Shown here: piece by piece, positions 1,511 to 61,284 of the stretch
How the letters are laid out: each line of letters opens with the position of its first letter
How positions within the stretch are numbered: the first letter of the stretch is position 1
The notes under the pieces: generated by a model
Told to the model about the DNA's origin: nothing
Database searches by the model: none
The model's input: the letters and a program-made list of their open reading frames with translations, nothing else
Made by a program: the position numbers and the translations under genes
IMG/VR virus record: IMGVR_UViG_3300036770_007539
Coordinates: 186,001-250,000 of that record
Reading direction: 5' to 3' (one strand)
Length of the DNA stretch: 64,000 nt

Positions 1511-2605
1511 ATGCGAGTTAAAGTACAAGGATTTTTATTTGGTAAGTCTCATAGCTGGGCATATGTTAATCAAAATTTAGGCAGATCCTTGCTTAAATTG
1601 GGGCATGATGTAGAGTTCGTTTCCACAGATGGCAATGACCCCAAGCATACCCCAAATGATTTAAAACCGTTTATTAAATCATTTGGAATTGGCAATTATG
1701 ATATGCAAATATCTTATACTGCTATGATTAATTTTCCTCAATATTTATCTTCTGGAGATAAAAATAGATTTGGAATATGGTGCTATGAATTTCCAATTAT
1801 TCCAAAAGACTTTATTAAATATTATAAAAGCTGCGATAAAATTCTAGCTCCCAGTAATTTTGCCAAAGATATTTTTATTAATAATAAAGTTCCAGGAGAT
1901 AGTGTTGTAGTCGTTCCTCATGGTATTGATTTAGATGCATTTAATAATAAAAATAAATTTAAATTAAAAACCAATAAAAAAATAAAATTTTTAATTCCAT
2001 TAGGTCAGCCTCATATCAGAAAAGCAATCCCTGAAACCATTGAATCGTTCTATAAAGCATTTACAAATAAAGATGATGTTTGTTTGGTTGCAAAAATACC
2101 AAGTTCTTCTAAAGAAGAGTCCAAGCCTTTCGAGGTTGATGTTAAAAAAATAATTAATAAATTAAATGAAAAATATAGACAGCATCCAGAAATAGAATTA
2201 ATTACTGATTATGTTCCTGATATGGTTTCTTTATTTAATGCTTGCGATGTAGTATATTCATTGACACATGCTGAATGTTTTTTCATGCCAGCACTTGAGG
2301 GTTTTGCTGCTAACAAGTTGGTTGTTGTTCCAGGTCATGGTGGTCAATTAGATTTTTGCAATAATGAAAATAGCTTGCTGATTTCTGGAAAAGAAGTTAG
2401 GGCTCCAATGGAAGCTCAGTATTGGTCCCCATCTCCATTTAATTCTTATTTTGAAGCAAATCAAGAGCACGCAGTAGAAGCATTAAGAAGTGTTTACCGC
2501 TCTTATGATTCTATTTTAGAATCTAAAAAAGAATCTATGAAAAATACGGTTCAAAATTATACTTGGGATAATGCTATTAATTTAATCTTGAAAGAAGTTG
2601 TTTGA
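1511..2605 (+). CDS. Glycosyltransferase family 4 (GT-B)
   Basis: VVPHGID, RKAI, ECFFMPALEG (EGFGLPxLEA-like) motifs. Confidence 0.9.
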   Translation: MRVKVQGFLFGKSHSWAYVNQNLGRSLLKLGHDVEFVSTDGNDPKHTPNDLKPFIKSFGIGNYDMQISYTAMINFPQYLSSGDKNRFGIWCYEFPIIPKDFIKYYKSCDKILAPSNFAKDIFINNKVPGDSVVVVPHGIDLDAFNNKNKFKLKTNKKIKFLIPLGQPHIRKAIPETIESFYKAFTNKDDVCLVAKIPSSSKEESKPFEVDVKKIINKLNEKYRQHPEIELITDYVPDMVSLFNACDVVYSLTHAECFFMPALEGFAANKLVVVPGHGGQLDFCNNENSLLISGKEVRAPMEAQYWSPSPFNSYFEANQEHAVEALRSVYRSYDSILESKKESMKNTVQNYTWDNAINLILKEVV

Positions 2606-3288
2606 TGTTGGTAAGTATTATAATACCTGTATTTAATCAAGTTTCTTTTACTCAGAAATGTATAAAAGACTTATTACAATTAAAAGTAGAAAATGAAATT
2701 ATAGTTATTGATAATAATAGCACAGATGGAACTGATTCTTTTTTTTCAAGTTTAAGCAGTAAAAATTTAAAATATTTAAAATTAAACAGTAATGTTGGAT
2801 TTGGAGCAGCTAATAATATAGGCGTGGAAAATTCTTCTGGTAAAAATTTATTATTTTTAAATAATGATGTTTGTGTTTTAAAAGATAAAGACAGTTGGAT
2901 TGATCCATTATTAAATCTTTGCCAAGATAGATTGTTGTCTTCTCAGTCAGGGTTGTTAGATTTTAATTTTAATTTTGTTAAAGAAGTATCTGACCCTCAT
3001 GTTTTAAAAAATTCTTTTGAGTATTTAAGTGGTTGGTCTTTGTTGGGATCTAGGGAGTTATTTAATCAAATCTCTCAAGAGGAAGGCGTGATATGGTCAA
3101 AAAAATATTTTGCATATTTTGAAGATGCTCATCTTAGCTGGAAGGCAAGAGATTTAAAAATACCAATGGAAGTAGTTAAAACTCCACTTCATCATTTTGG
3201 AAGAATTACTTCGAGTAAAATGGGTCTATCTAAAATGTATCAAGATTCTTATAAGATTTTTTCTAATTATTGGAAAAGTAAAAAATGA
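2602..3288 (+). CDS. Glycosyltransferase family 2
   Basis: VSIIIPVFN, IDNNSTDGT, GFGAANN, LNND, YFED. Confidence 0.9.
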   Translation: MMLVSIIIPVFNQVSFTQKCIKDLLQLKVENEIIVIDNNSTDGTDSFFSSLSSKNLKYLKLNSNVGFGAANNIGVENSSGKNLLFLNNDVCVLKDKDSWIDPLLNLCQDRLLSSQSGLLDFNFNFVKEVSDPHVLKNSFEYLSGWSLLGSRELFNQISQEEGVIWSKKYFAYFEDAHLSWKARDLKIPMEVVKTPLHHFGRITSSKMGLSKMYQDSYKIFSNYWKSKK

Positions 3289-4094
3289 AATTGCACATAT
3301 TAACTTTAACATGGAATGGCTCTTTTCTATTACAAAGATTAGCTCCAGGACTATTAAACAATGTAAAACATGCAAATATTGATTATCATTGGTATGTCCG
3401 CAGTAATGGATGCAAAGATGATTCTATTGATTATCTAAATTCTTTAGAAGAAAAAATTTCTATCTTAAAAAAAGATCATAATAGAGAAAATTTTTCTCAA
3501 GGAGTAAATTCTCTAGCAAATTTAGCCAGAGACAACATTTCAGATGGAGACCTGTTTTTGTTATTAAACAATGACATCTCTTTTAAAGATCCTTTTTCAT
3601 TAAAAAATGTTATTGATTTATATTTAAAATATAATCCTGGAATAGTAGGAGCTAAGTTAAATTATACGAATTCAAATAAGCTTCAACATGCTGGGGTTAT
3701 TTTTTCTACTAAGTATGGCAACATGCCTTGGCATTTTCGAGCAGGCGAAGAAGAGGATGAAGAATCTAAAAAGAATAGATATTTTCAAGCTGTTACTGCT
3801 GCTTTTATGATAACTCCATGCAAATTATTTTTTGAAGCGGGCATGCTGGATGAAAAATTCAATTGGGCATTTGAAGATATTGCTTATAACTTAAAAATTT
3901 CTAATATGGGTCATAAAATAATTTATTGTGGTAATACTCATATAGATCATGGAGAGTCAGTTTCTTTAAAAAAGAATCCAGTAAATAAACTCATGATAGA
4001 CTCAAATGTAAAACATTTTAAAAATAATTATGGGAATCTTTATAAGATAGATCATGATTTGTATTTGAATAATAAAAATTATGGACTAATATGA
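3285..4094 (+). CDS. Glycosyltransferase family 2
   Basis: LLLNND, LQHAGV, AVTAAF, FED, HGES motifs. Confidence 0.88.
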   Translation: MKLHILTLTWNGSFLLQRLAPGLLNNVKHANIDYHWYVRSNGCKDDSIDYLNSLEEKISILKKDHNRENFSQGVNSLANLARDNISDGDLFLLLNNDISFKDPFSLKNVIDLYLKYNPGIVGAKLNYTNSNKLQHAGVIFSTKYGNMPWHFRAGEEEDEESKKNRYFQAVTAAFMITPCKLFFEAGMLDEKFNWAFEDIAYNLKISNMGHKIIYCGNTHIDHGESVSLKKNPVNKLMIDSNVKHFKNNYGNLYKIDHDLYLNNKNYGLI

Positions 4095-5068
4095 AAACTT
4101 TATGCTTGCCCTACTGCCCTGGTATTCCTTGGAATATTAATGACCAAGAAGTTATTGTTAGGAAATTAAATGGAGACCCGCAAGCACTGTTAACAAAAGA
4201 TTTAAATATCGTATGTCATGGTGGCTTACTAGAATCTTTTATTTCAACATTTGCTATAGAATATTTAAAATATAAACATCCATATAAAAAAATTATTTGG
4301 CACGGGAGTCAAGAATTTAAGCACGTAATTGATTATCAAGGAATAGCTACTTATTCAAATGAAATTACTTCTGAAGTGGCTAATTCTTATCCTATACATT
4401 TCTTTAAAGACAAAGAGAACAATACTTATTTTAATTTATTAGATAATTATTTGGATTATCATACTTATCTTGGGAAAAAGATTAAAAAAAATAAAATGAA
4501 CTTCATTGATACTTTTAACAAGAATTTTATGTTGGAAAATTTAATGAAGCATAAACTGCAGTGTAGAAATAAGCCAGAAGATTTAGAATTTATATCTTGG
4601 TGTAATTTAAATAAAAACATATTAAATAAGCCCTATGTTGTCATTCTCCCAGACAGACTGACTACATCTATGCATCATCTAGATTTTATGAATTTTTCTA
4701 TGATGGAATTAAGAGGACTTACATCAGTATTGAATTCTAAGGGGATTCAAGTTATTATTATGTCTAACGATCCCTCTAAGTATTATGGAAATTTTAAGTT
4801 TATAAAATATTCTTTTGCAAGGTTTTTATCTTTGGCAGTAAATTCTAAGATTGTTTTGTCAAGACAGCCCGACTTTTCATTAATAGCATTAATGATTTCT
4901 AGAGCAAATGTATATTCTTATATGATTCGACACATGCCAAAAATCAAATTAAAGCCATCTATTCGAAGAATAAAAGGCAGAATAGATCCAGATTGGAAGT
5001 ATCTAAAGAGACAAAATACTATTCCTTTATTAATAGAAGACATTACTAGGAGAATTTATGAGCGCTAA
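4091..5068 (+). CDS. Hypothetical protein, possibly divergent GT9/heptosyltransferase-like fold
   Basis: Weak resemblance (HGGLLES, KYKHP, PYVVILP) and position in a GT operon. Confidence 0.35.
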   Translation: MKTLCLPYCPGIPWNINDQEVIVRKLNGDPQALLTKDLNIVCHGGLLESFISTFAIEYLKYKHPYKKIIWHGSQEFKHVIDYQGIATYSNEITSEVANSYPIHFFKDKENNTYFNLLDNYLDYHTYLGKKIKKNKMNFIDTFNKNFMLENLMKHKLQCRNKPEDLEFISWCNLNKNILNKPYVVILPDRLTTSMHHLDFMNFSMMELRGLTSVLNSKGIQVIIMSNDPSKYYGNFKFIKYSFARFLSLAVNSKIVLSRQPDFSLIALMISRANVYSYMIRHMPKIKLKPSIRRIKGRIDPDWKYLKRQNTIPLLIEDITRRIYER

Positions 5069-5837
5069 ATTATTAATGGTAACTTATAATAGGTTGGAAT
5101 TAACCAAGAAAACTTTAGATAATATTTTCAAAGTTACTAACTTTCCATTTGAATTGGTTATTGTTGACAATGCTTCTTCTGATGAAACGGTATCATACTT
5201 AAAAGAAATTCTTCCTAATAAATCTTTGAATGATAATTATATTGGAGCCAAGTTATTATGCAACTCAAATAACTTGGGAATAGCCATAGGTAGAAATCAG
5301 ACAATGCTATTAGCTGGTAATTCTGATTGGTACGCAACCCTAGATAATGACGTTCTCCTCCCAGAAGGATGGCTAAAAAAATGCATAGATATAATGACTT
5401 TAAATGCTAAGTATGGTATGATTGGAGTTAATTTTGAAAGCGTTAAGTATCCATTAGTAGATGTTGGACCATATAAAGTTCAGCACAAGAAAGAGGGAAA
5501 CTTAGGAACTGCTTGCATGGTTTTTTCTAAAAAAGTTCATAAAATGATTGGATTCTTTAATGATAAAGATTATGGAAAGTATGGGCTAGAGGATAGTGAT
5601 TATGGATTTAGGACAAGAGTTGCAGGGTTTCAATTGGGATATTTGGAAGATGAAGGTGTTCATTTAGGAGAAGATTCGGCAGATAAAGGCGAATATAGAA
5701 AGTTTAAAACTGAAGAACATAATAAATATTTGCAAAAATTTTATGGTAACTGTAAATTATATTATAATAACTCAAAACCCATCTATTTAAAAATAGACAA
5801 AGAAAAATATCAATTAGATAATATTTTAGAGTTTTAA
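5058..5837 (+). CDS. Glycosyltransferase family 2
   Basis: VTYNR, VDNASSDET, GIAIGRN, LDND, GLEDSDY. Confidence 0.9.
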   Translation: MSAKLLMVTYNRLELTKKTLDNIFKVTNFPFELVIVDNASSDETVSYLKEILPNKSLNDNYIGAKLLCNSNNLGIAIGRNQTMLLAGNSDWYATLDNDVLLPEGWLKKCIDIMTLNAKYGMIGVNFESVKYPLVDVGPYKVQHKKEGNLGTACMVFSKKVHKMIGFFNDKDYGKYGLEDSDYGFRTRVAGFQLGYLEDEGVHLGEDSADKGEYRKFKTEEHNKYLQKFYGNCKLYYNNSKPIYLKIDKEKYQLDNILEF

Positions 5838-8527
5838 TGATATCTGAATATTTTTATGAAGATTTGAAATTCGTATGTGCCTCTGCCGTATCTTGTAAAT
5901 ATAATAAAGAATATATATTAGAGCCTAGATACGGCAAGGTTAATTTCAATTTTATTGAAAAATTTACTTATATAAATTTATTCTTTAAAAGAATTTCTGG
6001 AAATGGAAAAATATTAATTAATAATGTTCCATATGTTATTTCTTCTAAAAGTTCTGATGTGAAAAGCATTTCAGCCAATGATGGCAATATTTTTATATCC
6101 AGACCCATTGATTCTATTGGCGAAGTGGCAATTTTTGGTATAGAACTATATTTGCAAGAAGGAAGTGATATAATGAATTGGAAGTCTTTAGTTAAGAAGT
6201 TGTCTGATTATCGTGGGCTATCATTAATAAATAATGAATTGCTGGCAAAAGAAAATGCTTATATTAGCCCAGCCAGCAGAGTAACTGATATTGTGACTTT
6301 GCCAGAAAATGTTTCGGTTGTTAAAGATGATAAAATTTATTTTAAATATCCTTGTAAAATTTTGCAACTAACATTACAGGATGATCAAGCTTCTAATTCA
6401 AATATTAATATTTTTCCGCCAAGAGAATCTCCAAGTCCTTCAGTTATAAACTTTAATAAAACTGATGATTTAACTTTAAATAGTCAGCAAAACAATATTC
6501 AAGTTATGAATTTTAAATCAACAAACAATCAAAATAATAAAGAAAAAGATCAAATTCTTCGCATCGTTTATGACTCATCGGCTAGTGGTGTAATTAATTC
6601 AAATACTATTAAAAATAATGAAAAATTATTAAAGTTCTCTCATGTTAATGAGAAGAATTATATTTTTATTAAAGCAGGGGGAACGCTGACCCTTCCCTTA
6701 TCGAGCATTGATCATGGAAAAAAATATATTTTAATAATTAATGCCAAGAAGGTTAGTGGTAACGGAAAGGCTCAGATAACTACTTCTTTAGATCAGCATT
6801 TTGATTTTGTTGTATCTAATTCATTTCAAGATAAAAATTTTAATTTTAGTTCTTTTAATTTATCTAAAGAGTATGACATATTTAAATTATCAATTTCTAT
6901 GCCTAATACTTCTTTCGGAGAAATTGTTATTTCTAGAATCATGATTTTAGAAGACTTTAATCAGGACAACCTAACTCTTTTAAATAGCGCTCACAGCCCT
7001 GGCAAGCAAACATATGCTCTTCAAAACAGTTCATATAATAAATTAAATAAAAATAAAAAATTTGTTATTGTTATTCCTAGTTATAAAAATCAAGAATGGG
7101 CAGAGAAAAACATTTTATCGGCATTAAATCAAAATTATTCAGATTTTAGAGTTCTTTTTACTGATGATTGCTCTCCTGATAATACTTTTGATGTTGTAAA
7201 AAAAGCTGCAGAAAATCATCCAAATAAAAATAAATCTGTTATTGTAAAAAATGAAGTTCGTAAAGGGGCTTTAGAAAATCTCTATAATATGATTCATTCC
7301 TGTGATGACGATGAAATTATATTAACATTGGACGGTGATGACTGGCTAGCAAGTCCAGAAGTATTAAATATTTTAAATAGTCATTATTCTGATGATATAT
7401 GGATGACTTATGGTCAGTATCAAAATTATCCAGATGGAGGAAGGGGAATTGCCCAACTAATACCAGACCAAGTTATAAAAAATAAAACTTATAGAAGCCA
7501 TACTTGGTGTTCTTCTCACTTAAGAACTTTTTATGCTTGGCTATTTAAAGAAATTAAAAAAGAAGATTTATTTTATGAAGGCAGGTTTATGGCAATGACC
7601 TGGGACATGGCTATGATGTTTCCAATGTTAGAAATGTCTGGTCACAGATCTAGATTTATAAGCGATTATTTATACATATATAATTTAGTAAATCCAATCA
7701 ACGATCATAAAGTTAATCAAAAATTACAACAAAAGCTAGATAGGCTGGTTAGAAACATGCCTAAATATTCTCTTCTCAACAGAGAGCCATCGCATGTATT
7801 GGAGAACAGAATTAAAAATAAAAATAAAATAGGATTATTAATAATTGCAACCGGCAAGTACGACCAATTTATTTCTCAATTAGTTGAATCTGCTGACAAG
7901 TATTATTTTAATGATTCAAGATTTGATGTAACGTATTTTATTTTTACTGATAAGCAAGTTTCATTAAATACTTTAAGAAATTATAAAGTAATTAATATAC
8001 AGCATCGAGGATTCCCCTATGCTAGTATGGACAGGTTCAAACATTTTACAAATAATTCTGAAGAATTATCTAAAATGGATTATTTATATTATGTAGACGT
8101 TGATTGTAAGTTTGTAGATCACGTCTCTGCTGAGACCTTGGGAGAATTAGTTGGGGTTCGTCATTGTGGTTATTTTAATGGCGGTGGCACGTTTGAAGAA
8201 AATAAAAATTCTGTATTTTATGAAAATCCCCAAAAATATAAATATTATTTTGGAGGAGGATTCAGCGGAGGAAAAGCCTCTTCTTATTTAGAATTGTCAA
8301 AATGGTGTTATGAAATGATAGAAAGAGATTTATCAAATAATATAATTCCAACCTGGCATGATGAAACAGCTTTAAATAGATACTTCTTAGATCACGAGCC
8401 TGAAATTGTATTAACTCCCAGCTATCACTATCCAGAAAATTATTCAAATTATATTGCAAAATGGAGACCCCATAAATTTACTCCTAAAATTATGCTCTTA
8501 GAAAAAAATCATAAGGAAGTAAGATGA
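5837..8527 (+). CDS. Multidomain glycosyltransferase: duplicated N-terminal beta-rich domain + GT2 + GT6 (ABO-type alpha-1,3-Gal/GalNAc transferase)
   Basis: GT2 part: IVIPSY, DDCSPD, LDGDDW. GT6 part: IGLLIIATGKY, YFIFTD, DVD, YYFGGGFSGG, WHDETALNRYF, LTPSY, LEKNH. Confidence 0.88.
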   Translation: MISEYFYEDLKFVCASAVSCKYNKEYILEPRYGKVNFNFIEKFTYINLFFKRISGNGKILINNVPYVISSKSSDVKSISANDGNIFISRPIDSIGEVAIFGIELYLQEGSDIMNWKSLVKKLSDYRGLSLINNELLAKENAYISPASRVTDIVTLPENVSVVKDDKIYFKYPCKILQLTLQDDQASNSNINIFPPRESPSPSVINFNKTDDLTLNSQQNNIQVMNFKSTNNQNNKEKDQILRIVYDSSASGVINSNTIKNNEKLLKFSHVNEKNYIFIKAGGTLTLPLSSIDHGKKYILIINAKKVSGNGKAQITTSLDQHFDFVVSNSFQDKNFNFSSFNLSKEYDIFKLSISMPNTSFGEIVISRIMILEDFNQDNLTLLNSAHSPGKQTYALQNSSYNKLNKNKKFVIVIPSYKNQEWAEKNILSALNQNYSDFRVLFTDDCSPDNTFDVVKKAAENHPNKNKSVIVKNEVRKGALENLYNMIHSCDDDEIILTLDGDDWLASPEVLNILNSHYSDDIWMTYGQYQNYPDGGRGIAQLIPDQVIKNKTYRSHTWCSSHLRTFYAWLFKEIKKEDLFYEGRFMAMTWDMAMMFPMLEMSGHRSRFISDYLYIYNLVNPINDHKVNQKLQQKLDRLVRNMPKYSLLNREPSHVLENRIKNKNKIGLLIIATGKYDQFISQLVESADKYYFNDSRFDVTYFIFTDKQVSLNTLRNYKVINIQHRGFPYASMDRFKHFTNNSEELSKMDYLYYVDVDCKFVDHVSAETLGELVGVRHCGYFNGGGTFEENKNSVFYENPQKYKYYFGGGFSGGKASSYLELSKWCYEMIERDLSNNIIPTWHDETALNRYFLDHEPEIVLTPSYHYPENYSNYIAKWRPHKFTPKIMLLEKNHKEVR

Positions 8528-9243
8528 TTACTTTCAGTCAGCTTGGTCAGTGGGGAAGACTAGGCAATCAATTATTTGAAGTAGCAACTACTGTCGGATT
8601 AGCCTTAAGAGTTAAAGAATCTTATGGATTTCCTGAATGGGAATATTCAAAGCATTGTAACTTACAGAACTGTTATTATGATAATTTAAAAATTACAAAC
8701 ATATATCATGAACCATTTTTTCATTATAAAAAAATAGACAATAAAAATAATAACTTAGATCTAAGAGGGTATTTTCAAAGCTACAAGTATTTTGATGATT
8801 ATAAATATTTTATTTTAGATGCTTTAGTTCCCAATTTAAATTTAAATCCAGAATCTGATTTATGTGGGATTCATGTTAGAAAGGGAGATTATATAAATTT
8901 AAAAGATTGCTATCAACAACTAGACATGAATTATTATAATCAAGCTATAGAAGAAATAAAATCTGATAGATATATTATATTCTCAGATGACATTGAATGG
9001 TGTAAAAAAAATTTTATTGGTGATAAATTTCAATTTTCTCAGGGCAGAGAGCCACATGAAGATTTAGCAATTATGGCAAAACAGTGTGATAATATGATTA
9101 TTGCAAATTCTTCGTTTTCATGGTGGGGAGCTTATTTAAATACAAATTTTAACAAAAAAATTATTGCGCCTAAAAAATGGTTTGGTCCAAAATTACCGCA
9201 TGATACCAGTGATTTATTGCCAAAAGAATGGATTGTTATATGA
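8524..9243 (+). CDS. Alpha-1,2-fucosyltransferase (GT11)
   Basis: GRLGNQLF, GYFQS, HVRKGDY, FSDD, ANSSFSWWGAYL are the GT11 signatures. Confidence 0.93.
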   Translation: MITFSQLGQWGRLGNQLFEVATTVGLALRVKESYGFPEWEYSKHCNLQNCYYDNLKITNIYHEPFFHYKKIDNKNNNLDLRGYFQSYKYFDDYKYFILDALVPNLNLNPESDLCGIHVRKGDYINLKDCYQQLDMNYYNQAIEEIKSDRYIIFSDDIEWCKKNFIGDKFQFSQGREPHEDLAIMAKQCDNMIIANSSFSWWGAYLNTNFNKKIIAPKKWFGPKLPHDTSDLLPKEWIVI

Positions 9244-10202: not shown

Positions 10203-10746
10203 TACTACTAAGATGGATAGGTATCCTAAAATTTTTAATTTTTTATCTGAAAATTATCAAGACTCATTAAAAATTCTATCTTTTGGCTGCTCTTCGGGAG
10301 AAGAATGCTTCTCTTTGAGAAAATACTTTTTAAAATCTAAAATATTTGGGGTAGATGCTAATGATGAAATATTAAAAGAAGCCATTAAAAATAATAATGA
10401 CAATAATATTTATTTTGACAACAGCATAATGAACATTGAATCTGTTGATATGATTTTTGCAATGTCGGTATTTTGTAAGCATCCAGAATCATTTGATTTA
10501 TTAAAAAATACTGTTTATAATTTTAAAGATTATAATGAAGAAGTTAAAAAGCTAGATAGTAAATTAAATAAAAATGGTATTTTTATAAACTATAATTCAA
10601 ATTATTTTTTTTCAGATACCGACGTTTATTATAAATATTCTCCGATTTTGGGAGATTTTGAAAAGGAATTTGTTAAAAAATTTGATAAAAATAAAAATTA
10701 TTCAAATTTAGAATCACCCGTCATTTTTATAAAAAATAAAGTTTGA
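10171..10746 (+). CDS. Class I SAM-dependent methyltransferase (CheR-like motif I)
   Basis: ILSFGCSSGEE, FGVD. Confidence 0.75.
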   Translation: MRLLMIHQTHNTTKMDRYPKIFNFLSENYQDSLKILSFGCSSGEECFSLRKYFLKSKIFGVDANDEILKEAIKNNNDNNIYFDNSIMNIESVDMIFAMSVFCKHPESFDLLKNTVYNFKDYNEEVKKLDSKLNKNGIFINYNSNYFFSDTDVYYKYSPILGDFEKEFVKKFDKNKNYSNLESPVIFIKNKV

Positions 10747-10771
10747 TATAGGTAAATTTTATTGGAGACAT

Positions 10772-11698
10772 ATGAAGCCTGAAAAAATTATTTTATGGGG
10801 ATACCCTCTTCACTCTCATACACATTCTTACATTCATTATGCTTTTAAGCGAGCCTTTGATTATTTGGGATGTGAAACTTATTGGTTTACTGACAAAGAT
10901 GATGTTTCTGGATTTAATTTTAATAACTGTTTATTTATTACTGGCGGAGATCAAGAACAAAATATTCCTTTAAATAAAAGCAGTCGCTATGTGATTCATA
11001 ATGTAAATGCAAAAAAATATTTAGACCAAAATTGTAAGATATTTTTAATACAGACTCATACTAAAGATGCTCCACTAGATACAAATCCTAATTCTCATAG
11101 AATTAATCCTTGGAGTCTATTACATACGGATAATGATATAAAATGTTTATATATGGCATGGGCAACGGACTTACTGCCAAATGAAATTAATTTAAACAAT
11201 GCAACGAATCAAAATCATAATAGAGAATGTGTTTGGGTCGGGACTTCTGGGGGCGGCAATTCTAAATTTGAAAATGGAAGTGCTCTCTATCCTTATTTTG
11301 AAGAATGTAAAAAAAACAATATTATTGTAAATAATATTGATCCCTGGGCTACTCCTGTCTCGCCAGAAAAAAATTTATTATTAGTTAAAAATTCATTTGT
11401 ATCCCCATCGATACAAGGACCTTGGCAAGTAGAGAGCCAATACATTCCCTGCAGAATATTTAAAAATATTTCTTATGGTCATTTTGGAATTACTAATAAT
11501 TCTTATGTGAATCGTATTTTTAATAATCAATTAATATATGATTCTAATTCTACTACGCTGTTCTATAAATCATTGGAGGCTAAGCAAAGCTCCGGGGCAG
11601 TTGATTATATAAAATCTTTAATGCAAGAAGTTAAAAATAATCATACATACATAAATAGAATACAAGTTTTATTTGATTGCATGGGGCTTGAATTATGA
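10772..11698 (+). CDS. Putative glycosyltransferase-like protein (GT-B C-terminal-like motifs)
   Basis: YIPCRIFKNISYG and HTYINRI resemble CgeB/GT1_2-type motifs; GGAG RBS. Confidence 0.5.
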   Translation: MKPEKIILWGYPLHSHTHSYIHYAFKRAFDYLGCETYWFTDKDDVSGFNFNNCLFITGGDQEQNIPLNKSSRYVIHNVNAKKYLDQNCKIFLIQTHTKDAPLDTNPNSHRINPWSLLHTDNDIKCLYMAWATDLLPNEINLNNATNQNHNRECVWVGTSGGGNSKFENGSALYPYFEECKKNNIIVNNIDPWATPVSPEKNLLLVKNSFVSPSIQGPWQVESQYIPCRIFKNISYGHFGITNNSYVNRIFNNQLIYDSNSTTLFYKSLEAKQSSGAVDYIKSLMQEVKNNHTYINRIQVLFDCMGLEL

Positions 11699-12666
11699 AC
11701 GTTTTACATGTTACGTTCCATCAGGGCTGTAAAATAAATCTAGATTATGTTGCTCAAAGTTTAGGTTTTAATCTTACAACTCAAAGAGCTGATTGGAATT
11801 ATAACATAGGCTCAAATAGAGCAAATGAAATTTGGAATAAGTATAAAGACTATTATAATTCATTTGATGCAATAGTTACATCTGACACAGCTCCGCTATC
11901 AAGAATATTTTTACAAAATAATTATAGTAAAAAATTAATTGTATGGGTTTGTAATAGATTCGATTATTGTGATATGTCAACAAATGACTGTGCTTTTCCA
12001 GACCAATCATATTATCAATTAATAAGAGATTCAATAAATAAAAATAATGTAAAATTTTTTTCTTATACTAAATTTGAGCATGAATACGCTCAAAAATATA
12101 GAGGTATAAACTGGGGCAATGAAACAATTAAACCATGCGCATTTTATGATGACACTCCTCCAGTTAATTTTGCTTTAAGTGGAATTGATAAAGAATCTAC
12201 ATTTTTTATTCCCCCATATCATAATGATACTATTTTTATGAATTTAAAATCTAAATGCGATCAGTTAGGGATAAGAGCTTATGCTGGGAGATACAATGGT
12301 CCATTAGATTTAATGAATATTAAAGGAATTATTCACATACCATATGCTTGGTCTAATTTGGCTCTATTTGAAAATTGGTCAATGGGAAATGTTTATTTTG
12401 TTCCTTCTAAAGATTTTCTAATTAATTTAGCACATCAAAATAATTTTTTCTGGAGCCCGCCTTTTCCATTGGACCATATCGAATCGTCCGAATGGTACCT
12501 CCCAGAGCATAAAGATCTTTTTATTTATTTTAATGATTGGAATCATTTAAAAACTTTAAGTAATGATAACGATTTAATAAATTCAAAAAAAACGAAAGTT
12601 TTAAATTATAGCAAAATTCACACGAATGAAATGTTAAATAAATGGAAAAAAGCACTTGACCTATAA
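11695..12666 (+). CDS. Hypothetical protein in glycan locus (possible glycosyltransferase)
   Basis: ORF with ATGA overlap; HIPYAWSNLALFE resembles a GT-B C-terminal motif. Confidence 0.45.
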   Translation: MNVLHVTFHQGCKINLDYVAQSLGFNLTTQRADWNYNIGSNRANEIWNKYKDYYNSFDAIVTSDTAPLSRIFLQNNYSKKLIVWVCNRFDYCDMSTNDCAFPDQSYYQLIRDSINKNNVKFFSYTKFEHEYAQKYRGINWGNETIKPCAFYDDTPPVNFALSGIDKESTFFIPPYHNDTIFMNLKSKCDQLGIRAYAGRYNGPLDLMNIKGIIHIPYAWSNLALFENWSMGNVYFVPSKDFLINLAHQNNFFWSPPFPLDHIESSEWYLPEHKDLFIYFNDWNHLKTLSNDNDLINSKKTKVLNYSKIHTNEMLNKWKKALDL

Positions 12667-12674
12667 GGAATAAA

Positions 12675-13889
12675 ATGATTCAAGGATTTTATACTGGATG
12701 TATAAATTCAGGAAATATTGGAGACGATGTTTTATTTAATATTTTTTTAAATTTATTAAGCGAATGCATTGTTGATAAATATAAAGTTAATTGCTCAATA
12801 GATCAAAATCAATTATTTCTAAAAGATTCTTCTAAAGAATGGATGGAAAACTCTTCTATTGGTGTAGTTGGAGGAGGGTCAATTCTTCATCCAGAAGAAA
12901 TTTCTTATTCAGGTCCTATTAAAAACTATGAATCAAATATTAAAGCATCTTTATTATTTGGAACTGGAATATCAGATACGCCAAATTTTAAAATATCAGA
13001 AAGTGATAAGTTAAATATATTGTCCGGAAAGTATTTAAATTTAAATTTTCCAATAAATAAAATGATGAGTGAAAACATTTTAATTGCTAAAAATATAAAA
13101 TTTGGCGGGCTACGAGGACCATTAGACGTGGCTGTATGTAGAAGTTTTGATGAAACTTTTCGTAAGCCATGGATTTATGATCCGGGACTGTTATTTAATA
13201 GATATTATAATTTAAATTCTTTAAAAAATAAAAATTCTAATATTATTGGAATAAATATTGCCAACATATCTGGAGATAATAGAATTTCATTAAAAAATGA
13301 AAAATACATTGATTATATGAACAGGTTGGAGTCTGTTATTGTAGATGTATGTAATTTTTTAATTAATAAAAATTATAAAATATATTTTTACTCAATGTCC
13401 GATGGTGAAATGCATTTGCATAATACTATTATTAATAAACTGGATAAGAATTTAATAGGATCAAATATATTAACTCACAATAAACCTTTAAATTATGTTG
13501 AATTGGCTTTGTTATCTTCTACTTTTAAATTCGCCATAGCAACTAGACTGCACGCCAATATTTTATTAAATTCTAATTTAATTCCTACCATAAATTTAAT
13601 GTATAATATTAAAGCAAGTAATTATATGAAAAGTATAGAAATGCTTGAACTGGGGGTTCCAACAGATTCTAATATGAATTTAAATAATATAATTAATAAA
13701 TATAATTTTTTAATGCAAAATTACGATAATATTATTAAAACATTAAAGTTTAATGTTGAAAAAGCGTATACGTTGCACTATGATGAAATAATGAAATTAT
13801 TAGATGGTATTAATTTAAAAATAGAAAATGATGTAAATATACAATATCAGATATATAATAGTATATTAGGTTTTTTTAAAATTAATTAA
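12675..13889 (+). CDS. Polysaccharide pyruvyl transferase family protein
   Basis: GNIGDD, VGGGS, LRGP, DPG, TRLHANI. Confidence 0.82.
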   Translation: MIQGFYTGCINSGNIGDDVLFNIFLNLLSECIVDKYKVNCSIDQNQLFLKDSSKEWMENSSIGVVGGGSILHPEEISYSGPIKNYESNIKASLLFGTGISDTPNFKISESDKLNILSGKYLNLNFPINKMMSENILIAKNIKFGGLRGPLDVAVCRSFDETFRKPWIYDPGLLFNRYYNLNSLKNKNSNIIGINIANISGDNRISLKNEKYIDYMNRLESVIVDVCNFLINKNYKIYFYSMSDGEMHLHNTIINKLDKNLIGSNILTHNKPLNYVELALLSSTFKFAIATRLHANILLNSNLIPTINLMYNIKASNYMKSIEMLELGVPTDSNMNLNNIINKYNFLMQNYDNIIKTLKFNVEKAYTLHYDEIMKLLDGINLKIENDVNIQYQIYNSILGFFKIN

Positions 13890-13898
13890 AGGCAAAAA

Positions 13899-14531
13899 AT
13901 GAAAGAGTATAGTTTTGAAGGCGCACAAGATTGGCATCATTATTTTAAAATTATTTTTGATAATTTCAAAGTAAGAAATATGTTAGAGTTTGGTCTTGGC
14001 AATGGTACTGAATTTTTATTAGATCATTGTAACACCGTTACTTCTGTTGAAATTTCATTGGGCGATTATAACAAATCCTGGTATTCTATGTGTTTAAAAA
14101 AATATTCTCATTATAATAATTGGAATCCAATATATATTGAAGCTTGTGATGAAATTAGAGAAGCTAATGAAATCGCTCAAAAGAATAGATATCCGATATC
14201 ATATAATAAACATTTATCTAAATTAGAAGAAATTACAGATCTTGTTTTATCAGATCATGAATATGATGCTATTTTTGTTGATGCTGGAATTCATAATAGA
14301 GGCGATATTTTAAATTTAGTAATGGGCAAAGCTCCTATAATTGCAGCACATGATTCCTCTAGGGATGAAAATAGAATACTTAAAAATATATACGGATACA
14401 ATATTGTTCGAGTTCCGAGTGATTATTTAGAATTTCATTTTGAAGATACGTATATGGGTACTACGATTTGGGTTAAAAAAGATTTTAACAGCAATGTTAT
14501 TAGTTCTTTGTCAGGAAGATTAAACAAATGA
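13899..14531 (+). CDS. SAM-dependent methyltransferase
   Basis: MLEFGLGNGT, VTSVE, YDAIFVDA, AHD. Confidence 0.75.
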   Translation: MKEYSFEGAQDWHHYFKIIFDNFKVRNMLEFGLGNGTEFLLDHCNTVTSVEISLGDYNKSWYSMCLKKYSHYNNWNPIYIEACDEIREANEIAQKNRYPISYNKHLSKLEEITDLVLSDHEYDAIFVDAGIHNRGDILNLVMGKAPIIAAHDSSRDENRILKNIYGYNIVRVPSDYLEFHFEDTYMGTTIWVKKDFNSNVISSLSGRLNK

Positions 14532-15223
14532 AAATTTTAGATACTTATAAAAAGTATTTAGATCTTGGCACAAATGAAGGATTAAGATATAATGATGAGA
14601 GTAAATCTCGTTTTGTTTCTTTTAATATGTGCTTAGAGCGTCTTGCAAAATTAAGTGCCCCTAAAATATTGGAACTAGGGACTAGTCGTAGTTATGTTGA
14701 TGGAAAATTTCCAGGATGTAACTCTGATGATAAAAAATTTTGGAATAAAGATGACTTTTCAAAATGGGACTGGGGCGCAGGGTGTTTTACATTAATGTTT
14801 GGAATGCATCTTCCAAATGCAAAAATTACTACATTAGATTTAATTCCCAATCACATTAATAGATGCCAATATATGACCTCTTCTTTGGATCTTGATAACG
14901 TATCCCATGTTGTATCTGATTCAATAAGTTATTTAAACAGCACGAGTGAATCATATGATCTAATTTATTTAGATACAGGCGATATGCACCCAATAGAGCC
15001 AACTTGCCTTCTCCAGTTGGAAGAGGCTAAATCTATTGTTGGCAAAAAAATATTAAATGCTCAAGGTCTGCTTTTAATTGATGATGTATTAAATGGAACT
15101 CCAAGAGAGATGGGAGATCTATCAAATAGATATGGTAAGTCAGAATTAGCTTTGCCTTATTTATTAAATAATAATTATAAATTATTATTTGAAGGTTATC
15201 AATATATTTTAACGCAAGGATAA
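14528..15223 (+). CDS. SAM-dependent methyltransferase (Methyltransf_24-like)
   Basis: ILELGT, SDS, YDLIYLDT, LLLIDD. Confidence 0.78.
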   Translation: MKILDTYKKYLDLGTNEGLRYNDESKSRFVSFNMCLERLAKLSAPKILELGTSRSYVDGKFPGCNSDDKKFWNKDDFSKWDWGAGCFTLMFGMHLPNAKITTLDLIPNHINRCQYMTSSLDLDNVSHVVSDSISYLNSTSESYDLIYLDTGDMHPIEPTCLLQLEEAKSIVGKKILNAQGLLLIDDVLNGTPREMGDLSNRYGKSELALPYLLNNNYKLLFEGYQYILTQG

Positions 15224-15224
15224 A

Positions 15225-16133
15225 ATGAAAGTTTTAATTACAGGGGGAGCTGGTTTTATTGGAAGCCATCTTGCGGATAAATTATTAGAATTAAATCATG
15301 AAGTTTTTGTTCTTGATGATTTATCTTCTGGAGATTTAAATAATTTATCTGCAAGGTGTAAATTTTTTGAAGTTGAAATATGCGATAAAAATTCAATTTC
15401 AAAAGCTTTTGAAATAGTTAAACCAGATGCTGTTTATCATTTGGCAGCTCAAATTAACGTAAGAAAATCCATTACAGATCCTGTATCAGATGCAGAAATC
15501 AATACTATTGGAACATTGAATGTTTTAAGCGAATGCGTTAAGCATAAAGTTAATAAGATTATTTTTTCTTCTTCTGGTGGTGCTATTTATCAAGATGATA
15601 ATGATTTTCTTAAAACAGAAAATTCTGTAATTCAACCAGCTTCTCCTTATGGAATTTCTAAATGGACAGGTGAGCAGTATATTAAATTTTATAAAGAAAT
15701 TTACGGTCTAGACTATACAATATTAAGATTAAGTAATGTGTATGGTCCCAGACAAAATAGCAAGGGAGAGGCTGGAGTTATTTCTATTTTTATTAATAAT
15801 GTTAAAGGCAATAAGCCCTTAACTGTTTTTGGCACAGGTGAACAAATTAGAGATTATATTTACGTAGAAGATGTCGTTAATGCAATGGAGTTATCTTTAA
15901 GAGTTTCGGGCACATTTAACGTTTCTACTGGAAAAGAAACAAAAGTTAATCAGCTCGTTGATAAAATATGTTCAGAATTTAATTATGATACTGTACTGTA
16001 TGCTCCTAAAATTGAGGGCGAATTGTTTAGAAATTGTTTGTCTTCTAAACTGCTACAGTCTTATGGATGGCAAGTTCTACATGATATAGAATCTGGTCTT
16101 AATAAAACAATAAAATATTTTAAAAATAATTAA
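15225..16133 (+). CDS. NAD-dependent nucleotide-sugar epimerase (UDP-Glc/GlcNAc 4-epimerase-like)
   Basis: TGGAGFIG, HLAAQ, YGISK (YxxxK), NVYGPRQ, RDYIYVED. Confidence 0.9.
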   Translation: MKVLITGGAGFIGSHLADKLLELNHEVFVLDDLSSGDLNNLSARCKFFEVEICDKNSISKAFEIVKPDAVYHLAAQINVRKSITDPVSDAEINTIGTLNVLSECVKHKVNKIIFSSSGGAIYQDDNDFLKTENSVIQPASPYGISKWTGEQYIKFYKEIYGLDYTILRLSNVYGPRQNSKGEAGVISIFINNVKGNKPLTVFGTGEQIRDYIYVEDVVNAMELSLRVSGTFNVSTGKETKVNQLVDKICSEFNYDTVLYAPKIEGELFRNCLSSKLLQSYGWQVLHDIESGLNKTIKYFKNN

Positions 16134-16138
16134 AAATT

Positions 16139-17140
16139 ATGAAGAAAGTTTTAATTACTGGCGTAACAGGTCAAACAGGCTCTATTCTTGTTGAAAATTA
16201 TTTAAAACAAGGAGATTATGTTCACGGTATGATTAGAAGAAATTCTAATTTTAACACTAGAAGAATTGATCATGTATATAATCATCCCAATTTAAAATTA
16301 TTTTATGGTGATTTGGCAGATTATGGTTCTATTTGTTCAGCTGTATCCGATTTAAAGCCTGATTATTTTATTAATTGTGGGGCTCAGTCTTATGTCAAAG
16401 CTTCTTTTGATATTCCTGAATACACTTTTGATATTGATGCAACTGGAACTATTAGATGCCTTGAAGCAATTAGAAAGTTTAGTAAAAATACTAAGTTTTT
16501 ACAGTGCTCTACTTCTGAGTTATATGGTTCAACTCCACCTCCTCAAAGTGAAACTACATCGTTTCATCCACGCTCCCCTTATGGGGCAGCTAAAATTGCT
16601 GCTTACTGGGCAACTGTAAATTATAGAGAAGCATATAATATGTTTGCTGTAAACTCGATCTCGTTCAACCATGAAAACTCTAAAAGATCAGAGCACTTCG
16701 TTACTCGTAAAATTACCCGAGCAGCTACTAGAATTAAACTTGGTCTTCAAGATAAATTAACTCTTGGCAATCTCGAAGCTAAAAGAGATTGGTGTGATGC
16801 TCGTGATATTGCCCGTGGTCAAATGATGATGCTAGATTCTGATGTTCCAGATGATTATGTCTTGTGCTCTGGCAAGTCTCGTTCAGTAAAAGAATTTGCT
16901 GACATTGTTTTTTCTAAATTGGGTCTGAATTATCAAGATTATGTTGAAGTTTCAGATAAGCATTTTAGACCCTCAGAAGTAGATCATCTTTGCGGAGACT
17001 ATACAAAAATTAATAAAGCTTTAGGCTGGGAGCCTCTAATTTCTTTTGATCAAATGGTCGAGGAGATGATCGATCACGATCTCAAGCTTGCCCAACAAGA
17101 GCAGGTCTTAGCTCAAAACGGATTTAAATATACTCTATGA
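16139..17140 (+). CDS. gmd: GDP-mannose 4,6-dehydratase
   Basis: ITGVTGQTGS, AQSYVKASF, STSELYG, PRSPYGAAK, FNHE, FVTRKIT, RPSEVDHL. Confidence 0.95.
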   Translation: MKKVLITGVTGQTGSILVENYLKQGDYVHGMIRRNSNFNTRRIDHVYNHPNLKLFYGDLADYGSICSAVSDLKPDYFINCGAQSYVKASFDIPEYTFDIDATGTIRCLEAIRKFSKNTKFLQCSTSELYGSTPPPQSETTSFHPRSPYGAAKIAAYWATVNYREAYNMFAVNSISFNHENSKRSEHFVTRKITRAATRIKLGLQDKLTLGNLEAKRDWCDARDIARGQMMMLDSDVPDDYVLCSGKSRSVKEFADIVFSKLGLNYQDYVEVSDKHFRPSEVDHLCGDYTKINKALGWEPLISFDQMVEEMIDHDLKLAQQEQVLAQNGFKYTL

Positions 17141-18096
17141 AAGTTTTAGTTACAGGCGCAGCCGGATTTATTGGTGCTAATTTTATTAGGCGCTCTACTT
17201 ACCTAAAAGGTAAAGAACATCAATTTGTATCTATAGACAGTCTTTTATATCCTCATAGCAAAAGTAATTTCTATATCAGTAATGGAAAGTCTGATAGTTT
17301 TTATATGGCTGATATTGCTGATAAAAAGATTATTGATAATATTTTTGAAATTGAAAAACCTGATATTATCGTGCATTTCGCCGCAGAGTCTCATGTAGAT
17401 CATTCTATTGAAACGGCAGCGCCCTTTATACACTCTAATGTTTTGGGTACACAAACTTTAATTGATTGTGCCGTTAAACATAAGGTCAAAACTTTCTTTT
17501 ATATTTCTACGGATGAAGTGTATGGTCAGTTAAAATCTGAAAATGAAGAAGGTTGGGATGAATCCGCTTTCCCTAATCCTAGAAATCCATACTCTGCTTC
17601 TAAATTGTCCGGTGAGTTTTTAGTTAAAGCAGCTCACGAAACTCATAAACTTCAATATATTATTAGTCGATGCTCCAATAATTTTGGACCTAGACAATCC
17701 ACTAGGAACCTTATTCCAAAAGTTATAAAAAATATTGCAGAGGGCGTCGATGTTCCAATTTATGGTCAGGGTCAGCAAATGCGAGAGTGGATCTTTGTAG
17801 AAGACCACTGCGATGCCATCTGGCACATTATAGAGTCTAAACAATATAATCAAATCTATAATATTTCTACTGGCAATGAAATTACTAACCTAGAATTAGT
17901 TAATCATATTGCTAATATTATGGGCAGAGGTCATAATTTATTTAAATTTGTTCCTGATAGACCCGGACATGATTTTAGATACTCTTGCAAATCAGATAAA
18001 CTTCGAGCCTTGGGCTGGAAGCCAAGTGTAAAATTTACTAAGGCGCTAGAGTCTACCATATCATGGTATGACAATAATAGGTGGTTTTTTAAATGA
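17137..18096 (+). CDS. rmlB: dTDP-glucose 4,6-dehydratase
   Basis: HFAAESHVDHSI, STDEVYG, PYSASK, RCSNNFGP, DRPGHDFRY. Confidence 0.95.
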   Translation: MKVLVTGAAGFIGANFIRRSTYLKGKEHQFVSIDSLLYPHSKSNFYISNGKSDSFYMADIADKKIIDNIFEIEKPDIIVHFAAESHVDHSIETAAPFIHSNVLGTQTLIDCAVKHKVKTFFYISTDEVYGQLKSENEEGWDESAFPNPRNPYSASKLSGEFLVKAAHETHKLQYIISRCSNNFGPRQSTRNLIPKVIKNIAEGVDVPIYGQGQQMREWIFVEDHCDAIWHIIESKQYNQIYNISTGNEITNLELVNHIANIMGRGHNLFKFVPDRPGHDFRYSCKSDKLRALGWKPSVKFTKALESTISWYDNNRWFFK

Positions 18097-39210: not shown

Positions 39211-39410
39211 TTATTTATAATAAGTTATATAAAAAAGATCGTCAGGATTTTATATCATTTGTAAATGATAAGGGCTGGGAAGTTTCAATTCCTATTGATT
39301 TTTTTCACGCTAATAGAATTGCTTTATATTTGGAGCAAATTGGGGGAACATCAAACCCCGTTAATATTCAAGAGAATAATTTAAAAGAGGAGTCAGAAGA
39401 AGATATATGA
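39207..39410 (+). CDS. Hypothetical protein
   Basis: ORF with ATGA overlaps on both sides. Confidence 0.6.
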   Translation: MIIYNKLYKKDRQDFISFVNDKGWEVSIPIDFFHANRIALYLEQIGGTSNPVNIQENNLKEESEEDI

Positions 39411-45797: not shown

Positions 45798-45798
45798 A

Positions 45799-52324: not shown

Positions 52325-52325
52325 C

Positions 52326-60673: not shown

Positions 60674-60682
60674 AAATTAACC

Positions 60683-61270: not shown

Positions 61271-61284
61271 ATTAATCCCTTGAT

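Follow-up and report, generated by a model that had tools for sequence, protein, structure and literature searches.

What does a huge phage build with an unbroken run of glycan-assembly genes, and on which surface, its own or that of the infected cell, does the product end up? We explored this question for an island of 17 genes in a 64,000-nucleotide stretch of the virus record IMGVR_UViG_3300036770_007539 (positions 186,001 to 250,000; hereinafter, the window, from the first letter of which all coordinates are counted), analysed together with ~11 kb of upstream sequence from the 301,007-bp source phage contig (3300036770, Ga0310126_0000027; 100% identity over an 896-aa fusion protein encoded in the island). 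The island is best explained as a self-contained glycan assembly line, free of membrane proteins, that belongs to a clade of environmental huge phages. Glycosylation of the virion, in particular of its fibres, is our leading reading of where the glycan goes, held tentatively and at somewhat less than an even chance; between the virion and the surface of the infected cell, sequence alone cannot decide.

The 17 open reading frames (ORFs; Table 1) lie back to back on the + strand, spanning positions 1511-18096, precisely where a preliminary description made from the letters alone had placed them. From the dockerin gene in front of the island to the tubulin gene behind it, neighbours overlap by 1-32 nt or sit at most 25 nt apart. 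Domains were called with Pfam cut-offs and NCBIfam, and folds with AlphaFold2 (AF2), Foldseek (PDB, BFVD) and the ESM Atlas; enzymology and conservation as given below rest on such comparisons and predictions, from which we infer the sugar identities and the acceptor. Where the preliminary description counted 6 clear glycosyltransferase (GT) genes with 7 domains and 3 GT-like genes, we count 8 GT genes with 9 domains (a GT4, three GT2, a GT2-GT6 fusion, a GT11 and two enzymes of the GT-B fold), the genes at 3285, 10772 and 11695 having been upgraded, and one further candidate at 4091. Its three nucleotide-sugar enzymes, of the GalE, Gmd and RmlB types, all stand, with an RmlA-like gene outside the interval. 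One of its two pyruvyltransferases (9228) is clear and the other (12675) only sub-threshold, whereas its three methyltransferases shrink to one clear case (10171) and one below threshold (14528); the third was not found, the protein at 13899 having no match in Pfam, NCBIfam, PDB or the compared loci.

The fusion protein joins carbohydrate-binding-module (CBM)-like beta-sandwiches (aa 1-375), a GT2 domain (aa ~411-562) and a GT6 domain (aa 654-896). AF2 models its first ~400 residues as two confident beta-sandwich domains with a disordered linker between them, and Foldseek matches this N-terminus to tandem CBM or galactose-binding-like modules. The GT6 domain aligns with BoGT6a and with human GTA/GTB (E 1e-38 to 1e-33) and reads 'VDVD' where BoGT6a has 'FNAN', which makes it a metal-dependent enzyme of the DXD type and not of the NXN type. 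It keeps the catalytic Glu (WHDE) as well as the acceptor residues, all six of the BoGT6a positions His122, Gly124, Thr134, Tyr153, Trp189 and Glu192 being conserved. The first five of these contact 2′-fucosyllactose in BoGT6a, and DXD-type GT6 enzymes have been on record only from vertebrates, cyanophage P-SSM2 and Parachlamydia, the last of which encodes an A-antigen synthase (PaGT6) that transfers GalNAc onto the H-antigen or 2′-fucosyllactose and not onto LacNAc (PMC3516806). Given that a DXD-type GT6 with the residues for a fucosylated acceptor is accompanied by an adjoining GT11 and by GalE-type and Gmd enzymes, the predicted product is likely a GalNAc/Gal-alpha1,3-(Fuc-alpha1,2)-Gal cap that resembles the A/B histo-blood-group antigens (HBGA). 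Which donor the GT6 uses is not assignable, given F-G-G at the position that tells GalNAc and Gal apart. We considered, and rejected, the idea that the cap mimics mammalian blood groups in a gut setting, as the relatives of this phage were sampled from aquifer sediment at Rifle, vernal-pool mud and Lac Pavin.

We envisage the following division of labour. The GalE-type enzyme (15225) would supply UDP-Gal or UDP-GalNAc, RmlB and RmlA are expected to furnish a dTDP-6-deoxyhexose, and Gmd would top up a GDP-6-deoxyhexose, probably GDP-fucose, the last step coming from the host or from an unrecognised enzyme. A 5′ module (the GT4, two GT2, the 4091-type protein and a further GT2) would build the inner glycan and its attachment, an outer module (the GT2-GT6 fusion, GT11 and two GT-B enzymes) would add the HBGA-A/B-like cap, and the modifying enzymes are expected to decorate the glycan with pyruvate ketals and O-methyl groups. 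Assembly would proceed in the cytoplasm, directly on structural proteins of the phage, the foremost candidates being the giant baseplate-attached fibre proteins encoded just upstream. This would resemble the glycosylation of giant-virus fibrils, and the tandem CBM-like domains may hold the fusion enzyme on the growing glycoprotein. The fucosylated, pyruvylated and O-methylated glycan of the preliminary description agrees with these enzyme families; fucosylation is likely, from GT11 and Gmd, although a family scan detected no Fcl orthologue.

How far is this assembly line shared? We counted 193 relatives of the fusion protein. Many of them are encoded on contigs of 200-480 kb, two of which, RIF_PHAGE_35_13 (420 kb, Rifle sediment) and SR-VP_PHAGE_CIR_35_26 (462 kb, circular, vernal-pool mud), were described by Al-Shayeb et al. 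2020; in the tables of that study, the host of the related phages is unassigned and Proteobacteria account for only ~5% of the genes. We compared eight phage-type contexts, namely, the window and L003, L004, L005, L006, L091, L092 and L093 (L labels denote related loci or contigs; L005 is SR-VP_PHAGE_CIR_35_26, 179178-201376), all of which were retrieved through the fusion protein, so that its presence in 8/8 holds by construction. The conserved core consists of GT2, the GT2-GT6 fusion and GT11. GT2 directly precedes the fusion in 6 of the 8 contexts, and GT11 follows close behind it, with at most 4 genes between, in all 7 loci that extend past the fusion (the window, L003, L005, L006 and L091-L093), directly adjoining it in the window. 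The surrounding modules are variable and include FkbM/TylF methyltransferases, a PRK-aldolase fusion, nucleotidyltransferases, DegT aminotransferases and PMM. In the tree of GT2 domains, all fused proteins form a single clade (SH-aLRT 99), apart from 140 cellular paralogues, within which the N-terminal module was exchanged several times; the resulting fusions, with a methyltransferase or a CBM in the first position, recall the multi-domain enzymes of giant viruses. The adjacency of the dockerin gene to the cluster recurs in 5/8 contexts (the window, L003, L004, L006 and L091), at identities down to 42-52%, and all five of these carry the CBM-like N-terminus. In the 462-kb relative, genes for IF3, Thg1-like and PTH2-like proteins are located just upstream of the glycan cluster.

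Beyond phages, a GT2-GT6 profile run against one genome per prokaryotic species yielded 76 loci, overwhelmingly from Dependentiae/TM6/Babeliales, environmental Chlamydiae and metagenome-assembled genomes (MAGs) of Verrucomicrobia, including complete chromosomes of 1.1-1.5 Mb. Because the window's matches to these loci (37-56% identity) are confined to glycan genes, the loci are cellular and not mis-binned relatives of the phage. Matches were obtained for Gmd in 23 loci, the GalE-type short-chain dehydrogenase/reductase (SDR) in 29, GT11 in 14, the 10772 type in 11, the 11695 type in 9 and the 14528-type methyltransferase in 10, where the orthologue in L085 has a weak Methyltransf_24 match. By contrast, the 5′ module (1511, 2602, 3285, 4091, 5058) was not found in any of the 76 cellular loci that share the outer module, which suggests that the attachment chemistry is not shared with the cellular clusters. 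The clusters of Parachlamydia, Dependentiae and Verrucomicrobia resemble the island in their orthologous GT2, DXD-type GT6, GT11, two GT-B families, methyltransferase, GalE-type SDR and Gmd, and differ from it in that GT2 and GT6 are separate genes and that both the CBM-like domains and the 5′ module are missing. For instance, a 1.2-Mb chromosome with ankyrin, Fic, type II secretion system (T2SS) and MutS genes encodes Gmd, an Fcl-like SDR, GT2, a standalone GT6, a GT-B enzyme, methyltransferases and LicD; a Simkaniaceae contig carries GT25, GT6, GT2, an unassigned gene and GT11; and a Dependentiae single-cell contig (L089; JBHPCA010000001.1 38879-59751) carries three GT32-like genes (TcdA/TcdB-like fold family), four GT2 and a GT6. 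The latter contig also encodes ATP-sulfurylase/APS kinase and a sulfotransferase beside an ankyrin protein, a combination reminiscent of Moumouvirus, from which sulfated glycan genes have been reported. In Chlamydiae, Dependentiae and MAGs of uncultured Pseudomonadota, up to 5-6 paralogues from the GT2 family of the fusion stand in tandem; such arrays amount to large exporter-free glycan clusters in reduced genomes (e.g. L061, L034, L066).

Two of the enzymes lead in the direction of giant viruses. The families of 10772 and 11695 have their nearest structural relatives in Nucleocytoviricota, at sequence identities of 10-22%. For the 10772 model, the best viral neighbours in BFVD are GT domains of giant-virus multi-domain proteins, with Hokovirus on top (E 3e-14), followed by ChoanoV1, Pithovirus and Tupanvirus; the match to Mimivirus L138, from the fibril-glycan cluster, is weak (rank 50, E 0.013). 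Its top fold neighbours in PDB are the alpha- and beta-glucosyltransferases (AGT and BGT) of T4 (E ~5e-4 to 1e-3, TM 0.5-0.6), a likeness at the general GT-B level only, and its orthologues occur in phage and in 11 cellular loci, of Dependentiae/Chlamydiae-type genomes. The 11695 family is dominated by viruses (Uroviricota and Nucleocytoviricota), with orthologues in L005 and in 9 cellular loci. Virion fibrils of giant viruses are glycosylated through clusters of 6-33 genes, pyruvyl- and methyltransferases among them (PMC10117803). These clusters (Megavirinae fibril, chlorovirus capsid) and the island have in common a set of nucleotide-sugar enzymes, several GTs (multi-domain fusions among them), methyltransferases and a pyruvyltransferase, as well as clade-specific content; giant-virus clusters work without membrane machinery (PMC10117803), and the island would do so too as far as the window, the 10 kb upstream and the eight contexts show. 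Unlike them, however, the island belongs to a tailed phage of a prokaryote, its acceptors are candidates only, whereas the Mimivirus fibril protein R135 is established, and it would make an HBGA-type cap via GT6 and GT11 in place of Vio4NAc, Rha, bacillosamine and other giant-virus sugars.

Among the remaining genes of the 5′ module, the GT4 at 1511 has orthologues in L003, L004, L006 and L090. The ORF at 3285 has no direct Pfam match and no PDB match; it is a divergent GT2, given that its 44%-identical orthologues in L090, L093 and L006 score PF00535. The family of 4091 is small, with 169 clusters among 1.84 billion proteins, and the nearest ESM Atlas clusters are mostly viral and give a lead to a GT9 or pyruvyltransferase-like fold (TM 0.53-0.58); comparison of its profile with PDB, and hhalign against pyruvyltransferase and GT-B families, detected no relation. 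A 4091-type gene is always embedded in a GT4-GT2-GT2-X-GT2 block, and we regard its product as a candidate attachment or initiating enzyme. GT8, GT9 and GT25 could not be confirmed in the phage, where 4091 provides the weak GT9-like lead. Outside the island, positions 40080-41120 show a sub-threshold GT-B-like match (Glyco_trans_1_3 E 0.0055; MJ1255/VC2487 family E 2e-5) and may encode a further GT.

The preliminary description listed no flippase, polymerase, exporter, initiating phosphoglycosyl transferase (PGT) or multi-pass membrane protein in the locus, and this holds for the sequence scanned, namely, the window and the 10 kb upstream, although the enzymes may draw on carriers of the host. 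A Kyte-Doolittle scan of all 77 window ORFs found no multi-pass protein and none with more than 2 hydrophobic segments, the enzymes of the cluster lack transmembrane segments altogether, and no multi-pass protein is encoded in the 10 kb upstream either; no Pfam or NCBIfam family of flippases, polymerases, exporters or PGTs was recognised in the cluster or in the other scanned window ORFs. The comparison of synteny in related huge phages gave the same answer: the core is kept on the 200-480 kb contigs, and none of the eight contexts contains an exporter, polymerase or PGT gene, though the flanking sugar modules swap freely. The conclusion drawn from this absence, namely, that the glycan is put on virion proteins in the cytoplasm, nevertheless fails as stated. 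Tempting as it is, a missing wzx/wzy beside a GT cluster does not show cytoplasmic protein glycosylation: lipooligosaccharide (LOS)-type growth on lipid A-core and the glycosylation of teichoic acid need no exporter in cis, and WecA-primed O-units provide another bacterial route of this kind (PMC4506291). Moreover, the absence of exporters carries little weight because the cellular clusters with the outer module also lack linked wzx/wzy. The membrane ORFs looked up near those clusters were considered as wzx/wzy candidates and rejected, those in L051 and L073 being a major facilitator superfamily (MFS) transporter and KdpA/B, and that in L010 T2SSF; among the multi-pass ORFs, one with 11 segments at the edge of L080 and some with 4-5 segments (L012, L015, L020) were left unassigned.

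Upstream of the island, in this order, are genes for a 1,076-aa baseplate wedge protein (Baseplate_J / phrog_6), a 2,225-aa Laminin_G_3 protein and the 973-aa dockerin protein, so that the island lies directly downstream of genes in baseplate and fibre position; the ORF at 104-1489, after which the preliminary description let the island start as after a structural-type gene, is indeed the dockerin protein's C-terminal half. A target in the virion fits this position beside fibre-type genes. The 973-aa and 2,225-aa proteins are better candidates for the acceptor than the Ser/Thr/Gly-rich proteins at 31-36 kb and 59-64 kb proposed earlier. Both of these groups plausibly belong to the virion, yet no observation connects them with the island.

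Which destination, then, does the evidence favour? We lean to the virion in view of the post-fibre position, the phage-side inner module, the fold kinship with giant-virus GTs, the fused CBM-like domains and the lack of membrane parts despite module exchange. Several observations weigh against this assignment. Adjacency to fibre genes is absent in 3/8 contexts (L005, L092, L093), comprising both variants with a methyltransferase N-terminus and one CBM-type contig; the island, with replication genes downstream, occupies the border between modules, where cargo genes are frequent; the CBM assignment rests on TM-scores of 0.2-0.25 for the two-domain model, which are low because both domains are free to move; and our domain and fold calls recognised no GT41, EarP, BAHT or similar protein-targeting GT. 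Furthermore, lipid-linked pathways as a rule employ soluble GTs, linked exporters are also missing from the cellular clusters with the outer module, and jumbo-cyanophage clusters of a similar kind have been read in the literature as host surface modification (PMC7824862). That published reading also speaks for remodelling of the host envelope, the main rival, which we rate only a little lower. Here, soluble GTs at the inner membrane face would extend lipid A-core, LOS-style, or a WecA-primed undecaprenyl pyrophosphate (Und-PP)-linked sugar, MsbA/Lpt or Wzx/WaaL of the host would export the product, and the new surface glycan would block superinfection or the adsorption of progeny to debris. 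The gene content, soluble GTs with no membrane ORFs, is compatible with LOS or lipopolysaccharide (LPS)-core-type assembly, and the GT families match O-antigen/LOS loci, E. coli O86 using GT4, GT2, GT11 and GT6 on Und-PP (PMC4506291). Cluster content varies between related phages as it does among O-antigen loci, and the cluster is lower in GC than its flanks (29.0% against 33.9%), a typical sign of surface-glycan loci that were acquired. Clusters with some of these genes reside in cellular genomes, for which a cell-associated product is the simplest expectation, and the Simkaniaceae-type cluster (L088) adjoins a GT25 LOS-type gene, the sole such case. Yet there are no seroconversion-type membrane parts (GtrABC-like) anywhere in the window, the inner module was not found in the 76 cellular loci, which would be odd if host intermediates were the acceptor, and a Wzy-dependent host is unlikely to polymerise a foreign unit; we know of no lytic phage for which the construction of an entirely new glycan on the cell surface has been demonstrated.

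Other targets in the infected cell, such as a protein of phage or host that is not part of the virion, a polysaccharide (soluble or secreted) or a glycolipid, would mirror the Dependentiae/Chlamydiae clusters, some of which sit beside ankyrin, Fic and leucine-rich-repeat (LRR) effector-like genes, and the CBM-like domains could bind a polymer; we deem this unlikely, as no specific target is indicated and a phage clade that conserves an investment of 17 genes would be expected to use it in its structure or at a surface. Hypermodification of DNA, whereby the GTs would decorate hydroxymethylated phage bases against restriction, is very improbable. Multi-sugar glycans are possible on phage DNA (Pyle et al. 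2024, as cited in PMC12619734), and the closest folds to 10772 in PDB are the T4 enzymes; what weakens this reading is that cellular glycan clusters contain orthologues of 10772, and, in addition, GT6 keeps its oligosaccharide-acceptor residues and no hydroxymethylase or base-modifying enzyme is among the annotated window ORFs. We know of no GT6, GT11, pyruvyltransferase or methyltransferase of this kind in DNA modification. An extension of virion glycosylation, which we regard as a long shot, is that the hosts are Dependentiae- or Chlamydiae-like and protist-associated, and that the phage fibres wear the HBGA-like, pyruvylated and methylated glycan of the host, one that giant viruses would display by convergence, for uptake by protists or sticking to shared surfaces, as part of a 'glycan passport' toolkit common to intracellular bacteria, giant viruses and huge phages.

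The blood-group-B-like O-antigen pathway of E. coli O86 (WbnH/J/K/I) likewise employs GT4, GT2, GT11 and GT6, GDP-fucose genes and soluble GTs acting in sequence (PMC4506291). The island shares with Wzx/Wzy loci the sequential cytosolic GTs and sugar-nucleotide genes; unlike O86, wzx, wzy and wzz were not found in the locus, the GT6 is of the DXD type and fused to GT2 and CBM-like domains, and there are pyruvyl- and methyltransferases, more GTs and a phage location beside fibre genes. The 'capsular polysaccharide/LPS modification' clusters of jumbo cyanophages are similarly polymorphic multi-GT clusters with nucleotidyltransferases in large phages (PMC7824862), and their function is likewise putative; the GT6 of P-SSM2 is 31% identical to the GT6 domain of the island, both being of the DXD type (PMC3516806). 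The island shows the trait by which polymorphic GT clusters of jumbo phages were described, several GT families with nucleotidyltransferase and sugar-modifying genes that vary between related phages (Iyer et al. 2021; PMC7824862), and differs from the cyanophage clusters in lineage, habitat (here sediment, pool mud and lake), fusion architecture, the pairing with GT11 and the position after baseplate and fibre genes. Finally, O-glycosylation of mycobacteriophage virions (Freeman et al. 2023), as outlined in citing papers (PMC12619734, PMC11256854), also involves soluble phage GTs thought to act on structural proteins in the cytoplasm; compared by description only, those systems differ in having ~2-4 GTs, in residing in ~50-70 kb siphoviruses of Actinobacteria and in targeting the C-termini of capsid and tail-tube proteins.

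Table 1. Genes of the glycan island and associated features of the window, with the evidence for each call
Feature	Position	Strand	Evidence
461-aa C-terminal part of 973-aa dockerin-type-I protein	104..1489	+	Dockerin_1 E 9e-9; full gene L008:10001-12922
GT4-family (GT-B) glycosyltransferase	1511..2605	+	Glyco_transf_4 E 3e-10; no equivalog
GT2 glycosyltransferase	2602..3288	+	PF00535 E 6e-19
Divergent GT2	3285..4094	+	PF00535 only via 44%-identical orthologues (L090, L093, L006)
325-aa protein, GT-B-like lead only	4091..5068	+	ESM Atlas TM 0.53-0.58
GT2, conserved core	5058..5837	+	PF00535 E 2e-17; orthologues 46-76% identical in L003-L006
896-aa fusion: tandem CBM-like + GT2 + DXD-type GT6	5837..8527	+	Pfam, AF2, Foldseek, alignment
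GT11 family (alpha-1,2-fucosyltransferase family), conserved core	8524..9243	+	PF01531 E 1e-28
Polysaccharide pyruvyltransferase	9228..10202	+	PF04230 E 6e-21; orthologue in L006
Class I S-adenosylmethionine (SAM)-dependent methyltransferase	10171..10746	+	Methyltransf_31 33.2 bits (cut-off 27)
GT-B fold glycosyltransferase	10772..11698	+	AF2 pLDDT 90.5, pTM 0.89; Foldseek PDB and BFVD
GT-B fold glycosyltransferase	11695..12666	+	ESM Atlas TM 0.68-0.87 to GT4-like clusters
Probable second pyruvyltransferase (CsaB/WcaK-like), sub-threshold	12675..13889	+	PF04230 E 7e-4, 20 bits (cut-off 25.3); TIGR03609 CsaB E 1e-5
210-aa protein without family, PDB or locus match	13899..14531	+	
Probable SAM methyltransferase, sub-threshold	14528..15223	+	Methyltransf_31 23.3 bits (cut-off 27)
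GalE-type UDP-hexose 4-epimerase	15225..16133	+	263 bits, E 2e-77 to 4ZRM; Pfam, NCBIfam
GDP-mannose 4,6-dehydratase (Gmd)	16139..17140	+	PF16363 E 8e-112; TIGR01472 393.6 bits (cut-off 415)
RmlB-type dTDP-glucose 4,6-dehydratase	17137..18096	+	TIGR01181 356.5 bits; 254 bits to PDB dTDP-glucose 4,6-dehydratases
191-aa protein without family match	18093..18668	+	Overlaps RmlB gene by 4 nt
RmlA-like glucose-1-phosphate thymidylyltransferase, unlinked	54929..55654	-	PF00483 E 2e-43; TIGR01207 204.6 bits, below cut-off

The remainder of the window marks its source as a phage, by predicted gene content, and not as the cellular contig that the preliminary description had kept in view: in addition to the Baseplate_J gene upstream of it, it encodes a virion structural protein common to T4-like cyanophages, helicases of the UvsW and DnaB types, ribonucleotide reductase (RNR), TubZ/PhuZ, and lysis-type amidase and glucosaminidase. 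The tubulin gene (18691-20010; Tubulin E 2e-17, TubZ-like_C E 1e-7) comes directly after the island, the transcription unit of which possibly ends with the ORF at 18093-18668. A set of DNA-repair and nuclease genes encodes a 5′-3′ exonuclease, UvdE, an Fpg-type glycosylase and two RNase T-like exonucleases (51494-53252 (-), 56939-57766 (-), 39407-40054 and 45760-46413). The GC content of the window is low, 25-41% in 2-kb windows, and within the island, the GT part (1511-15223) has 28.1%, against 33.9% in the rest of the window and 32.3% in the upstream fibre genes, which fits a separate origin or turnover. Stop-codon usage is standard (TGA 44, TAA 28, TAG 5), and recoding was rejected, all 17 cluster ORFs being intact and an in-frame junction at 60.68 kb being a normal TGA, ribosome-binding site and ATG, with no read-through. 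No tRNAs were found in the 64 kb. A megablast search with 25 kb against annotated phages gave no match, nor did tblastn against them with the 973-aa, partial 2,225-aa, 4091 and 11695 proteins, and the promoter and terminator scan did not rise above shuffled expectation (138 vs 118 ± 10; 10 vs 7.5 ± 2.9), so that no operon boundaries were obtained.

Some of the neighbouring proteins merit mention in their own right. Dockerins usually bind cohesins on cell-surface scaffolds; the dockerin type I domain of the 973-aa protein in tail-fibre position is conserved in related huge phages and may be a receptor-binding device. The product of 32582-36511 (1,309 aa, 18% Gly, numerous GG(D/N)-type repeats) matches no family and has the look of a beta-helical fibre or adhesin; the gene in front of it (31289-32569) encodes an S/T-rich, fibre-like protein of 426 aa. 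At the other end of the window, small S/T-rich ORFs (59604-62402 (-)) adjoin the virion structural gene (62384-63754 (-)), and at least two of them, 60683-61270 and 61285-61869, are paralogues of ~195 aa (26% identity, E 3e-9). In Mimivirus, the fibril protein that is glycosylated belongs to the GMC oxidoreductases, and the product of 37673-38872 has an FAD/GMC-oxidoreductase-like N-terminus only, with weak matches, which makes it an acceptor lead and nothing more.

Jumbo phages were already known to have multi-GT clusters, and giant viruses to glycosylate autonomously. New here are the CBM/methyltransferase-GT2-GT6(DXD) fusion with GT11, conserved across a clade of environmental huge phages, the placement of the island after fibre genes, the outer module common to Dependentiae, Chlamydiae and Verrucomicrobia genomes, and the predicted structural links to giant-virus GTs. 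The conserved fusion and GT11 predict a blood-group-like epitope in environmental phages, and the gene set partly common to those three bacterial groups is a hint at hosts. Should the glycan remodel the envelope, the island would represent a 17-gene re-engineering of the cell surface by an apparently virulent phage. If, instead, it is the virion that bears the glycan, the small actinophage systems would be joined by a first large and autonomous virion-glycan pathway of a tailed phage, one that would tie huge phages both mechanistically and evolutionarily to giant viruses and would bear on adsorption, grazing and particle stability in sediments.

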